A stretch of 62,803 nt of DNA, counting the filler, from Guillardia theta CCMP2712 (Eukaryota > Protista > Cryptophyta), in the NCBI RefSeq assembly GCF_000315625.1. It is 4 parts of 4 records of this genome, joined end to end, with 100 filler letters (N's around TTAATTAATTAA, not from the genome) between each part and the next. Parts side by side here need not be neighbours in the genome. Positions count along the whole stretch, not along the records: positions 25,739 to 55,022 come from NW_005434445.1; 3 more parts are not named here. The stretch is one strand, 5' to 3'. This document shows positions 29,522 to 40,128 of this stretch, one piece after another. A program made the translations under genes and the position numbers. A model generated the notes under the pieces. It ran no database searches, was not told where the DNA came from, and worked only from the letters and a program-made list of their open reading frames with translations. The stretch's first letter is position 1; each line of letters begins with the position of its first letter.

Positions 29522-32500
29522 ATGACTCTGATAGAGGATTTGGAGGATTCGAGTCTTAGGGTTCCGGTAGGTATATAGGATTCTGCCATGTACGTTCACA
29601 ACGTCAGATATTCGTGTACCTGTCGTTGCCTGAGAAAACTTGACGTGGATAGACGAAATGAACTGATGAGGTTCGAGGTGACATGTGATGGTTCCGCAAC
29701 TCCGCATTCATCTGACATCTGACAACACCTTGAAGGAGCATGACGTTGCTGTTTGTTGCAGATGTCCATATCAAAGGTGACTGGAATCCTCTTGAGCCTG
29801 GGCATCAACGACGAGCTGAACGCGCTCTTCGATAGCCTGAGCTCGGAGGACTCTTTCTTGCGCAGACAAGATGAGGTCCTAGAACGCATCTCCCTGCAAG
29901 ACCAGAACGAATACAGCATCTGGTCCGACTCAATCTTCCTGCCCTTGCTGTTTGCTAGCCTTGCACAGTCTACACGCCCATGTGACGTGCTGGAGTGCGT
30001 CCAAAACTGTCAAGCGAAGCATGCGGCAGAGTGGGGAAACAAAAAGGCAACAGGAAGGTACCTGATAGAGCAGTACCGAAAGTCAAATCAGGCACCCAAG
30101 GCCTTTGCGCAGCACTTCCCTATCGAAAGATCTTTGGAAGCTGCCAAGACCTGGATCCAGGGCTCGCTGAACAGCTCTGAGCGATGTTTGTCCACGTGGA
30201 GCAAGCTCAACGCAAGCCCAGACGTGTACTTCATGGACCTCTCGGTCGGTGACGTGCAGGAACAAGAAATGTTCAAGCTGTTGGCGGGGCCTGACGGGAG
30301 CTGGATTCGGGTGGTTCGCATCAACGAGGGCAAGGATGACCAGGACCGCACGCTGGGGTTGCTGGTGCTGCTGTCAGCCCCGGAGGAGATCAAGCTCCTG
30401 ATGGAAAAGTCGGATGAGCTGGAGAAGGAGATCATGGAGCAGGACTGCTCTGAGCGCCCCGCAAGGATTGAGCTACGAGGAAGGGGAGGGTGCAATCGGT
30501 ACAGAACAGCAATCGAGATCGAGATCGTGGATCTGAGTGACCTGACGGAACAGGAGTTCCTGGATGAGGTCAGGAAGGCATTTCGATGCAACACGCGGAC
30601 TAGCCCTGTTGGAATTCAGCTGGACAAGATCGAAAAGATCCAACTGGTGGAGGTTGACATACCTGGGGTGACGGAAGGGGAGCCGATTGGGGACGACTAC
30701 TTCGAAAAGATAGTGCGACTGTACAGAAAAGCTGAGAGCGGCAGCAGGGAGCAAGGGAGCCAACTGCTGTTGAAGTTCGAGGTCTGGGCGACCAAGGTTG
30801 CATCGGGCGAGGAGAGCGAGGAGAACGAGGAGGCTGAAGCAGAGGAGGTTCAGGAGATCGACCCGCTGGGGGTGGTGCATCCCGAGCAAAGAGCAGTGGC
30901 TCGCAGGATCCTTGGGAGGCTCAAGTATGTTTTGGAAGGGAGGGGGTATGAGCTATCTCAGTTCAAGAAGCTTGACTTTGCCGTCTTGCTGCCCAACTTC
31001 GTGTCGTTGAAGCAGCAGACGGAGGCTCGCATGCAGGCGACCTTGTACCCCAACATGGACGTAGACGTAGACAAGAAGGTGGTCCCGCTGCAGGCGAACC
31101 CAGTGATGTCGCTCAAGAAGAAAATCCTGAAGCTCGACAGCAGCACGCTCTTCGTCCTCATCTCCGACGAGTCTCACTGGGCGCTGAACAAGGACAGCCC
31201 ACAGGACCTCATCGTGAACGATCCAGACCTCGTCAAGAAGGCCAACTTCGTCGTCCTCCAGGTCAGCGCGACGCCTTTCGCCAACCTGACCCACCACAGC
31301 CGGATACCCGAGCTGTACGTCCGCTTCAAGGACGACGATCCTCACAGTGATGTCGTGGGCACCTTCAACTACTCTCAGGACATGCGACAGCGGACTGACT
31401 TGCAGGAGCTGCACGTTGTCAAGTGGAACCTGAGCTCGCAGCCCAGCCGGTCGACCTACTTCAGGCTCGAAGACTTTCTGCGCACCATGCCGTCGCCCAC
31501 GCTGCTTCACTGCATCCTGGAGCAGGAGCAGGAGCAGGAGCAAAAGCAGCACCGGAGCAGTCGGGCCCGGCGAAACCTGATCAGAGGGGACGATGCTCTG
31601 TGCAGCCTGATGCCCAGCAGCAGCCAGAAGCGGAAGAAGGACGACCCAGTGCGTGAAGACTACTGGATCGTCGACTTCCTCTTCTCCATGCTCTACTTCC
31701 ATCACATCCGATGGGACAGGGAAGCCAAGAGCCTCAAGCCGCTTCCCGGGGACAAAGACGACCTTCGGGAGGAAGTGGCTTCTTTCAACGAGAACGGCCT
31801 CGAGAAGGAGTTCCTGCGGTTGGCGGTGCAGGGGAACAACCCAAGGCTGATGATGGTAGCAATGGAGTACTTGAAAGCAGTTGAGAAGGAGCTGGAGGCC
31901 GATGACGATGAGTTGTTCAAGTCAGCGTTCGTGTTGAAGCTCAAGGCGGAGATGACAGAGATGAGAGGATCGAGCAGCAGGCAGGAGGAGGAGGAGGAGG
32001 AGGAGGAGGAGGAGGAGGAGGAGAGGCGCTTCTGCGGATTCAACGAGACGGATCGCATGCTAAAAGACCTGCTCTCGAGCAAGAAGATCGATGGCGGGCT
32101 CTACGGACACATGAAAGTCGTCAGGATGTACAACATCAACTTCGCCGACATGGTCTACGATGCCCTGAAGCTCTACCGCGATCACTTCTTCGATCAGTCC
32201 CCACCTCCCTTCGCCATAATCAAGGACTACGGCGGCTCTCCACTCATCGAGTGCATCGAAGATGCTTTCCGCAAGCAGCCGCTGGTGTACAAGAGGGGGA
32301 AACCTCCCCAAACGCTCAACTCGATCATTCAGAAGATGCGATCCAAGAACGCAAGTCAGCGGCGGCGGAACAACAGCGGGGAGTACATCCAGTACAAGGA
32401 TCTGGCAGGCCTGCCTTGCATCCTCCTCCTGATCGAGAAGGGCAGGATGGGCGACACGTTCCCCCAGTCCTTCAACTGTCTTGACATGAGGATCAGGTCC

Positions 32501-38500: not shown

Positions 38501-40128
38501 CCCGCAGAAGAAGGATTCCGACTCAGACTCTGATGAAGACACATACCCCAAACGGAAGATCGCAAGCCCGAGCAAGAAGCAGCGGGAGGAGGCGAGCAGG
38601 AAGACGATGGATGAGATCAAGGTATAGGAGGAGAGGGCAAGGGGGGAGGAGGAGCGAGAGCAGCAGGGGGGAGTGACATGCGTCTCCGCAGAAGGATGTC
38701 CAGCGAGACTATGAAGACGACGTTCCTTTATCGAAGATCACAAGCCCGAGCAAGAAGCAGCGGGAGGAGGCGAGCAGAAAGGAGCGGAAAGGGAGGATCA
38801 AGGTATAGAAGGAGGAGGAGGACGAGGACGAGGAGGAGGACGAGAGGAGAAGGAGGATCAGTGCAGCGGCAGCAGCAGCAGCAGCAGCAGCGGCGGCGGC
38901 AGCAGCAGCAGCAGCCGCAGCAGCAGCAGCAGCAGCAGCAGCAGCCGCAGCAGCAGCAGCAGAAGCAGCAGCCAGGCAGGCAGTAACATGCGTCCCGCAG
39001 AAGAAGGATTCCGACTCAGACTCTGATGAGGACACATACCCCAAACGGAAGATCGCAAGCCCGAGCAAGAAGCAGCGGGAGGAGGCGAGCAGGAAGACGA
39101 TGGATGAGATCAAGGTATAGGAGGAGAGGGCAAGGGGGGAGGAGGAGCGAGAGCAGCAGGAGGGAGTGACATGCGTCTCCGCAGAAGGATGTCCAGCGAG
39201 ACTATGAAGACGACGTTCCTTTATCGAAGATCACAAGCCCGAGCAAGAAGCAGCGGGAGGAGGCGAGCAGAAAGGAGCGGAAAGGGAGGATCAAGGTATA
39301 GAAGGAGGAGGAGGACGAGGACGAGGAGGAGGANNNNNNNNNNNNNNNNNNNNNNNNNNNNNNNNNNNNNNNNNNNNNNNNNNNNNNNNNNNNNNNNNNN
39401 NNNNNNNNNNNNNNNNNNNNNNNNNNNNNNNNNATGACGACAGGGTATGAGCAGGATACAGAGAGCTCCGACGACTTCAGCCCTCCGAGGGCAACCTTCA
39501 CTCCCACCAAACCAGCGCAGGAGAAGCGCAAGGGCGAGGATCAGGTGAGAATTGGGGGAGGGAGCGAGGGAGCGAGGGAGCGAGGGAGCGAGGGAGCGAG
39601 GGAGAGTAGCTGCTGCAGCAGCTGTAGGAGGGGGAGAGCAGACTTTGGGGAAGGGGAGGGGGACAAGGAAGAGGAGGAGGGGCGTCAGCGCCAGCACCAG
39701 CAGCAGCAGCATGCGGGAGGCGTCGCGAGGTGCCGGAGCTGCTGCTGACTTGTAGTCAGGAGGAGGAGAGGAGCGCAAAGAAGGCGAAGACGAGCAAGTA
39801 CCACCGGAAGTTGGAGAAGGAGTGGGAGGACCTGGTGAAGAGCGGGAGGATAGTAGAAGGTGACGTCATCAGCCACACCTCAAGCACTACTAGGATTCCA
39901 ATCAAGGGGACCGTCACAGCGGACGGGAAGCTGCGCTGGCAGGACAACGGTGCCTCGAGAGTCTACGACAATCATGCTGGGCTCCTGCTGGGCAGCAACG
40001 ACTACACCTGGGAGGACCTTCAACAGCGCTTCTCCAGGTGCAAGAAGAGCATCTACGTCAAGTCCTCTAGCGACGGGACGTCGAAGAAGCTCAAGGAGCT
40101 GCTCAAGGGGTTGGGCAAGAACAAGTGA
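29522..40128 (+). CDS. GREB1-like protein: circularly permuted SF2 helicase, TET/JBP-associated (TAGT, GT-A) glycosyltransferase, low-complexity repeated exons, C-terminal RAMA-like domain
   Basis: Exon 29762-32527: FVLISDESHW (motif II), LQVSATPF (III), LPCILLLIEKGRMGDTFPQSFNCLDMR (V). Intron 32528-32868 joins IQ/ELGRLSRY (VI). Then RFLLFAECQIGKTGAYLHLL (Walker A, 33751) comes AFTER motif VI. Glycosyltransferase ~34700-35700: VFTASYER, GGIGYARLF, IWMVDDNV, FFLLNV, WEDVEFN..CEEQGLAVLKINRF. Last exon: EDLVKSGRIVEGDVI...IKGTVTADGKL. The 5' start and the linkage across the 100-N gap are uncertain. Confidence 0.8.
37325..39333 (+). repeat. Tandemly duplicated exon-intron units (7 phase-0 exons of ~111-117 bp) separated by (CAG)n/(GAG)n introns
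   Basis: Exon type A, KKDSDSDSDEDTYPKRKIASPSKKQREEASRKTMDEIK (e.g. 37358-37471), and type B, KDVQRDYEDDVPLSKITSPSKKQREEASRKERKGRIK (e.g. 37542-37652). Each is flanked by CAG| and |GTATAG; order is A,B,A/B,A,B,A,B. Confidence 0.8.

Follow-up and report, generated by a model that had tools for sequence, protein, structure and literature searches.

The window analysed here is a stretch of 62,803 nucleotides (nt), filler included, from the cryptophyte alga Guillardia theta CCMP2712 (assembly GCF_000315625.1), in which positions 25,739 to 55,022 come from NW_005434445.1. The locus under study, at 29,522 to 40,128 of this window, is probably a single expressed multi-exon nuclear gene of about 10.4 kb, with at least 12 phase-0 exons, that encodes a GREB1-family protein of about 2,740 amino acids (aa). 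Membership of the GREB1 family is secure. That family has been described before, as has its relation to the base-J-type and phage DNA glycosyltransferases; what is new here is the C-terminal architecture of the protein, together with the clear intactness of every catalytic motif in a microbial eukaryote. From N- to C-terminus the protein most likely consists of about 370 aa with no assigned domain, a circularly permuted superfamily 2 (SF2) NTPase, a conserved middle region, a glycosyltransferase of the GT-A type, acidic low complexity, a series of modules encoded by short repeated exons (mini-exons), and a 122-aa tail that we consider below as a candidate RAMA domain.

The core of the gene is contained in two long open reading frames (ORFs) on the plus strand, 29753-32542 (929 aa) and 33031-36984 (1317 aa). 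As the initial annotation had proposed, they join in frame across one GT-AG intron, 32528-32868; the splice sites read CAG/GTGAGA at 32527/32528 and CGCAG/GAGCTC at 32868/32869, and both exons are in phase 0. The Pfam family for the circularly permuted SF2 module of GREB1 (cpSF2-GREB1, PF20692; cut-off 26.2 bits) matches exon 1 with profile positions 2-420 (E 2.6e-131) and exon 2 with positions 421-706 (E 1.6e-58). Since the profile is cut exactly at 420/421, the junction is exact by homology, and the splice joins ...TLIQ to ELGRLSRY..., which restores helicase motif VI (Q-x-x-G-R-x-x-R; here Q-E-x-G-R-x-x-R-Y). Inspection of the sequence gives the permuted motif order II-III-V-VI-I, so the SF2 motifs claimed earlier are present, and they are also conserved in eight aligned homologs, including two labyrinthulid 'GREB1-like' proteins and an annelid protein. 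NTPase motifs I, II, III, V and VI are all intact in the algal module, which looks competent, and ATP-driven action is plausible on these grounds. Upstream of this module, the Pfam scan found no family in the N-terminal 374 aa, and BLAST found no similarity between the N-terminal 370 aa or so and the N-termini of the homologs examined. A Zn-binding domain of the human GREB1 type was not detected in the first 374 aa with the Pfam families, which include no profile of that domain.

The second catalytic module lies in the same ORF within exon 2, C-terminal to the helicase. TAGT (TET/JBP-associated glycosyltransferase, PF20691; Pfam cut-off 27.5 bits) scores 27.2 bits inside the whole of exon 2 and 30.9 bits when the domain, 34636-35958, is scanned alone, and it was matched in 13 of 13 members of our homolog alignment (A1). 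D157, D158 and V160 are invariant in this alignment, and N159, E326 and D327 nearly so. The AlphaFold (AF2) model built from it has a mean predicted local distance difference test score (pLDDT) of 64, with a core at 80-90 and a disordered insert of about 65 aa; in this model a strand (153-156) is followed by D157-D158-N159, that is, an acidic DxD-type motif after a beta strand. When the model was compared with the PDB by Foldseek, nearly all of the 50 best matches were GT-A-type glycosyltransferases (LH3, COLGALT1, TarP, GnT-I, Mnn9, LARGE1), with probabilities of 0.72-1.00 (most 0.9 or above) and E about 1e-3, and no solved structure in the PDB is related in sequence to the TAGT domain. The earlier claim of a GT-A glycosyltransferase with DD and ED motifs, carried by IWMVDDNV and WEDVEFN, thus agrees with a profile score above cut-off and with the structural matches. 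We take the domain to be a glycosyltransferase of TAGT type and GT-A fold in which both the DDN and the ED motif are intact.

When the TAGT alignment was used for a profile search, the matches were all further fragments of GREB1-like proteins; neither the kinetoplastid base-J glucosyltransferase (JGT) nor a phage TAGT was among them, so the relation to JGT rests on Pfam and the literature. Two of the matches, seen in context, turn out to be pieces of exons from GREB1-like genes of environmental eukaryotes, and these have no RAMA-like tail. In four environmental contigs (L001-L004), GREB1-like genes are stored as strings of short prokaryote-style calls with PF20692 or PF20691. Because exon pieces are called as genes in this way, apparent stand-alone TAGT proteins (500-640 aa) in that database can be fragments.

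The best relative is a protein of another cryptophyte, Hanusia phi (P0001), with 38-42% identity to the spliced core over two long BLASTP alignments, and 55% in the best local alignment of the TAGT-region search; BLASTP identity to annelid and labyrinthulid proteins is 23-35%. The full set of GREB1-like homologs numbers 21 (P0001-P0012 and P0014-P0022), to which four homologous loci were added. Twelve of them (P0001-P0012) were scanned with Pfam; for the others and the loci, the comparison was a BLAST search using the tail and the remaining lineage-specific segments. The Hanusia protein, which is transcript-derived, carries about 55 extra, unrelated residues at the site of intron 1 (residues about 374-449) and has no motif VI; judged by its sequence, the insert resembles an intron that stayed in the transcript, the intron position being conserved.

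Four public sequencing runs were aligned to 34400-40300, among them X1 (2014), X2 (2018) and X4 (2011, a DNA run). X1 and X2 behave as RNA, because both hold spliced contigs, and contigs of both cover exon 2. The RNA-like contigs contain four GT-AG joints, of which 36948>36998, 37114>37358 and 37471>37542 occur in X1 and X2, and 39544>39760 in X1 only. The first of these removes a 49-nt intron, 36949-36997, and with it the stop codon of the 1317-aa ORF. Contig 1 of X1 (4766 nt, depth 200) comprises exon 2, exon 3 and 42 nt of the first mini-exon.

Seven mini-exons follow exon 3. They are 111-117 nt long, with lengths divisible by 3, AG/GT flanks and phase 0 throughout, and their introns are either 70 nt or a long CAG repeat. 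Two types alternate, type A reading KKD[S/T]DSDSDEDTYPKRKIASPSKKQREEASRK... and type B KDVQRDYEDDVPLSKITSPSKKQREEASRK..., and the codon-usage log-likelihood of the array is positive in the proposed frame. In each mini-exon an acidic Ser/Asp stretch precedes a basic one, SPSKKQREEA-RK, and the pair looks like CK2 sites plus a nuclear localisation signal (NLS). Read depth over the mini-exons is about 5 times that over exon 2, as collapsed repeat copies would give, and it suggests a copy number above that of the assembly; for the A type, the RNA depth ratio suggests 5-6 copies, compared with 4 assembled. The region 37115-39333 shows an exon-level tandem duplication, with near-identical mini-exons amid pure CAG/GCA repeats, the longest of about 540 nt, and a 493-nt unit repeated at 97% identity.

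Table 1. Features of the GREB1-family locus, in window coordinates
Feature	Position	Strand	Place, description and evidence
Exon 1	29762..32527	+	From first in-frame ATG (ORF open from 29753; 5' end putative); Pfam PF20692, motif alignment with 8 homologs
Motif II, DESH	31157-31180	+	Exon 1
Motif III, SAT	31259-31279	+	Exon 1
Motif V, GRMGDTF	32435-32461	+	Exon 1
Motif VI	32516-32527 + 32869-32892	+	Split by intron 1
Intron 1	32528..32868	+	GT-AG, 341 nt, phase 0; sequence and Pfam profile continuity
Exon 2	32869..36948	+	Rest of cpSF2, middle region, TAGT, then Asn-rich and Glu-rich low complexity; PF20692, TAGT, X1/X2 contigs
Motif I/Walker A, QIGKTG (GKT)	33742-33771	+	Exon 2
TAGT GT-A glycosyltransferase	about 34708-35700	+	Exon 2
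DDN	35104-35112	+	TAGT; within IWMVDDNV, 35092-35115
WEDVEFN (ED motif)	35608-35628	+	TAGT
Intron 2	36949..36997	+	49 nt, GT-AG; joint 36948>36998 in X1 (depth 200) and X2 contigs
Exon 3	36998..37114	+	39 aa, acidic Ala-rich linker; joints 36948>36998 and 37114>37358 in X1 and X2
Mini-exon array	37358..39295	+	Seven phase-0 exons, 37-39 aa; AG..GT flanks, joints, codon usage
Mini-exon A	37358-37471	+	Array
Mini-exon B	37542-37652	+	Array
Mini-exon A/B hybrid	37763-37879	+	Array
Mini-exon A	38508-38621	+	Array
Mini-exon B	38692-38802	+	Array
Mini-exon A	39001-39114	+	Array
Mini-exon B	39185-39295	+	Array
Assembly gap	39334..39433	.	Within intron after last assembled B exon (donor after 39295)
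Penultimate exon	39455..39544	+	30 aa if acceptor at 39454; joint 39544>39760 in X1 contig 5
Last exon	39760..40128	+	122 aa plus stop, basic globular tail; codon usage, sub-threshold RAMA

Downstream of the array the assembly is interrupted by a gap. A 210-nt DNA contig of X4 bears on its right edge, and consists, from left to right, of a GGA-rich stretch, 26 letters absent from the assembly, and 39434-39551. The GGA-rich stretch resembles the start of an array intron (best match 37885-37908), so that the contig bridges the right gap edge and places the penultimate exon about 76 nt after an array-type donor. The gap probably hides at least one further repeat unit, and since the exons on both sides are all in phase 0, the frame would be kept whatever the hidden copy number. 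The penultimate exon encodes DTESSDDFSPPRATFTPTKPAQEKRKGEDQ, with a pattern like that of the A and B exons, and is a diverged copy of the mini-exon family; its codon-usage log-likelihood is +7.4 in the proposed frame. At 39505, near the gap, the assembly has C where the X1 RNA and X4 DNA contigs have G, a synonymous change from CCC to CCG.

On this evidence we favour, with fair confidence, a continuous transcript from exon 2 to the last exon. Three observations pull the other way. No RNA contig of X1 or X2 crosses the gap or connects the last two exons with the array, the gap being uncrossed because contigs break in the repeated mini-exons; contig 5 of X1 extends back to 39449, 6 nt upstream of the phase-0 acceptor; and read depth is about 200 over exon 2 but about 77 over the last exon. 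The last two would fit a pair of genes, in which the GREB1-like transcript would come to its end inside the array, at an unspliced donor (AAG/GTATAG) that gives an immediate stop, and a separate small gene, with the in-frame ATG 39434 as its start, would encode a RAMA-like protein of about 159 aa. This division could also draw on RNA contigs that link the sequence from 39781 onward to upstream sequence outside the window. It would, however, leave the array without a terminal exon, and it separates the penultimate exon from an array with which it shares exon family and phase and from which, by the X4 contig, it is about 76 nt away, counted from an array-type intron start. We consider two genes rather unlikely and retain the single transcript. 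The initial annotation had described one protein, encoded by one transcript running through 40128: RNA bears this out as regards expression, the four joints, the stretch from exon 2 into the mini-exon array and, separately, the last two exons, but it does not link these two portions to each other.

The RNA contigs matching from 39781, one in each of X1 and X2, carry upstream of that point 255 in-frame letters that are absent from the window and end in ...GAGTTCTTGTATCAGACC. The AG at 39779-39780 could be an alternative acceptor, and the extra sequence suggests either a further exon upstream, hidden in the gap or located elsewhere, or a second, paralogous tail.

Codon usage trained on exons 1 and 2 gives the last exon a log-likelihood of +66, against -79 and -51 in the other frames, which marks it as real coding sequence. 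The same values disfavour use of the acceptor 39443, with which the frame would shift and the RAMA ORF would go untranslated.

Four kinds of search connect the tail encoded by this exon with RAMA domains. Pfam RAMA (PF18755; cut-off 35.2 bits) aligns over profile positions 3-61 of 107, with E 1e-4; the nearest Atlas clusters by ESM language-model features are small prokaryotic and phage RAMA proteins (score 0.78, which is weak); in a Foldseek search with a single-sequence model of the tail, RAMA structures of MPND rank 4, 7 and 13 of 350,542 chains, at E about 1; and an Atlas shape search has a RAMA cluster in row 2, with a template modelling (TM) score of 0.37. Each of these lines is weak and they are not fully independent, but the recurrence of a rare family in all four is unlikely to be due to chance. 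We accordingly think it likely that the tail is a divergent RAMA-type domain that would bind double-stranded DNA (dsDNA), as judged from sequence and model.

Several results count against this identification. At 22.6 bits the Pfam match is below its cut-off; the model of the tail is poor (pLDDT 57.6); VIA-align prefers PH-like folds for it, at Z of 3.8 or less; and neither RAMA nor another reader domain was found in the 21 GREB1-like homologs and four loci, of which twelve homologs were scanned with Pfam and the rest compared by BLAST, and none of them shows similarity to the mini-exons or the tail. A search by phmmer of 1.84 billion representative proteins gave one match (E 4.5e-5), a bacterial DUF7507 immunoglobulin-repeat surface protein, which we rejected as spurious and driven by five GDVI-type repeats. 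A word-index search with the last exon returned nothing at E up to 10, a sequence search of the PDB gave chance matches only, and tblastn against phages gave only chance matches to tail fibres. If the resemblance were fortuitous, the tail would be some other, lineage-specific fold, for instance PH-like, with no role on DNA, and the low bit score, the spurious phmmer match, the PH domains at the head of the VIA-align results and the weakness of all structural scores would be in keeping with this. We nevertheless hold it to be rather unlikely, given the four kinds of search in which RAMA surfaces and the start of the tail, which aligns with the start of the RAMA profile.

The Pfam and model examination of the spliced protein thus confirmed GREB1/TAGT and SF2, as the initial annotation had expected; its RAMA assignment survives as a resemblance in four weak lines, below the family cut-off and without sequence relatives. 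The further claim that the enzyme is guided by modified bases was not borne out. A function as reader of N6-methyladenine (6mA) was the original prediction for RAMA (PMC4738411), and in the solved structures, those of MPND and CcrM, the domain touches the dsDNA backbone and shows no specificity for bases or 6mA; 6mA did not raise binding by MPND (PMC9963953). With binding of this kind, the tail of the algal protein would be a DNA anchor rather than a demonstrated modified-base reader.

Taken as a whole, the protein would enter the nucleus, where the tail and the helicase-like module would hold it on chromatin; hydrolysis of NTP would reposition it on nucleic acid, and the GT-A domain would use a nucleotide sugar to glycosylate an acceptor that is exposed at that place. 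In this mechanism nuclear localisation and NTPase activity are predictions from sequence, and the helicase module of human GREB1 has been described as catalytically inactive (PMC7968844, PMC6163654). What this acceptor may be depends on how the family is read. Human GREB1 O-GlcNAcylates ER-alpha in a manner dependent on its glycosyltransferase domain, the only experimental activity in the GREB1 family (PMC7968844). The family was predicted in 2013 to modify DNA, and its link to the base-J-type and phage DNA glycosyltransferases is described in Pfam and, with reference to an analysis of 2013, in PMC7968844. The prediction of 2013 and the one activity measured, on protein, put the ancestral substrate of the GREB1 family in question. 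Roughly, and from sequence, we would give a chromatin or nuclear protein a reasonable prospect, just short of an even one, of being the acceptor, and smaller prospects, equal to each other, to an oxidised DNA base (5-hydroxymethyluracil, hmU, or 5-hydroxymethylcytosine, hmC) and to another acceptor or none; a protein acceptor is at least as likely as a DNA base.

One explanation, which we regard as quite possible though not probable, is a protein O-glycosyltransferase like vertebrate GREB1, in which the helicase-like module and the tail would only recruit the enzyme to chromatin- or RNA-bound protein substrates. The core, from cpSF2 through the middle region to TAGT, is homologous throughout to animal GREB1-like proteins such as annelid P0012, and the activity of human GREB1 on ER-alpha also speaks for this explanation. 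That activity is, however, weak in vitro and without sugar-donor specificity (PMC7968844), protein glycosyltransferases do not usually have an SF2 NTPase that is conserved and apparently competent, and ER-alpha is absent from algae, so that any substrate would differ. With a protein as acceptor, the algal gene would count as an ordinary ortholog to which a lineage-specific tail has been added.

The explanation advanced in the initial annotation was ATP-driven glycosylation of hmU or hmC in algal DNA. This would be a mark, epigenetic or defensive, that has not been described before, and the RAMA tail would serve as modified-DNA reader. Both the kinetoplastid base-J glucosyltransferase and the DNA glycosyltransferases of phages belong to TAGT (Pfam PF20691; PMC7968844), and circumstantial support comes from the intact SF2 motifs of an apparently competent motor, the probable DNA anchor in the tail and the NLS-like mini-exon repeats. 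Opposed to it are the backbone contacts of RAMA domains, the fact that the sole measured activity in the GREB1 clade is on protein, and a literature search that found no report of a glycosylated base in cryptophytes. Nor was the TET/JBP dioxygenase that would make the hydroxymethyl group, which the initial annotation had proposed to look for, found among the larger ORFs (roughly 130 aa or more) scanned in 25739-55022, a window portion of 29 kb; a literature search on TET/JBP in cryptophytes yielded nothing useful. We consider glycosylation of DNA doubtful on balance.

A stronger version, which we think unlikely, is that the family retains its ancestral role here, as a chromatin-acting DNA base glycosyltransferase whose competent permuted SF2 motor and RAMA-type dsDNA anchor would deliver the base-J-type GT-A domain to oxidised pyrimidines. 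If this were true, the alga would contain a glycosylated DNA base of a kind not yet described outside kinetoplastids and phages, and the protein-directed activity of vertebrates would be derived. A microbial family member with intact NTPase and glycosyltransferase motifs, NLS-like modules and a probable dsDNA-binding tail would be a practical test case for DNA versus protein as acceptor.

Around the locus, a TRAPPC9/Trs120-like exon at 26837-27799 on the minus strand (PF08626, E 8e-7) bounds its 5' side. A degenerate Ty3/gypsy-type reverse transcriptase (RT) fragment lies 1 kb downstream, at 41184-42757 on the plus strand, in two frames (RVT_1, E 3e-5, below cut-off). We rejected the idea that the tail is part of this retroelement, given the distance of 1 kb, the degenerate state of the RT fragment and the splice that connects the tail with an exon upstream of it. 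One X2 contig continues for about 660 letters past 40298, and if these are collinear with the genome, the 3' untranslated region would reach to about 40950, towards the RT fragment. Further downstream are a fragment with leucine-rich repeats (43671-44243, minus strand), a fragment of a DUF2009 non-canonical E2-like protein (47947-48717, minus strand) and an ORF with a CBM20 starch-binding domain (53573-55021, plus strand) that reaches the edge of the piece.

Among known systems, the RAMA domains of MPND and CcrM (PF18755) resemble the tail in size (about 100 aa), in basic character and in weak profile, feature and shape matches, the tail staying below the family threshold; the RAMA architectures listed in PMC4738411 include no fusion to GREB1 or TAGT. 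Animal GREB1 and GREB1L and the protist 'GREB1-like' proteins have the same core in the same order, that is, permuted SF2, conserved middle and TAGT GT-A, to which the algal protein adds the NLS-like, exon-duplicated modules and the RAMA-like tail. It differs from human GREB1 in its intact NTPase motifs, the human module being described as inactive. JGT and the phage TAGTs share with it the Pfam family, the GT-A fold and the acidic DDN (DxD-type) motif; they are stand-alone proteins that work with a TET/JBP dioxygenase, whereas the algal TAGT is fused to a helicase and no dioxygenase was found nearby. In kinetoplastid JBP2, a SWI2/SNF2 ATPase, of the non-permuted SNF2 type, is fused to a hydroxylase and not to a glycosyltransferase. 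By analogy, JBP2 and the algal protein would share one logic, the fusion of an SF2-type ATPase to an enzyme of a DNA-modification pathway.

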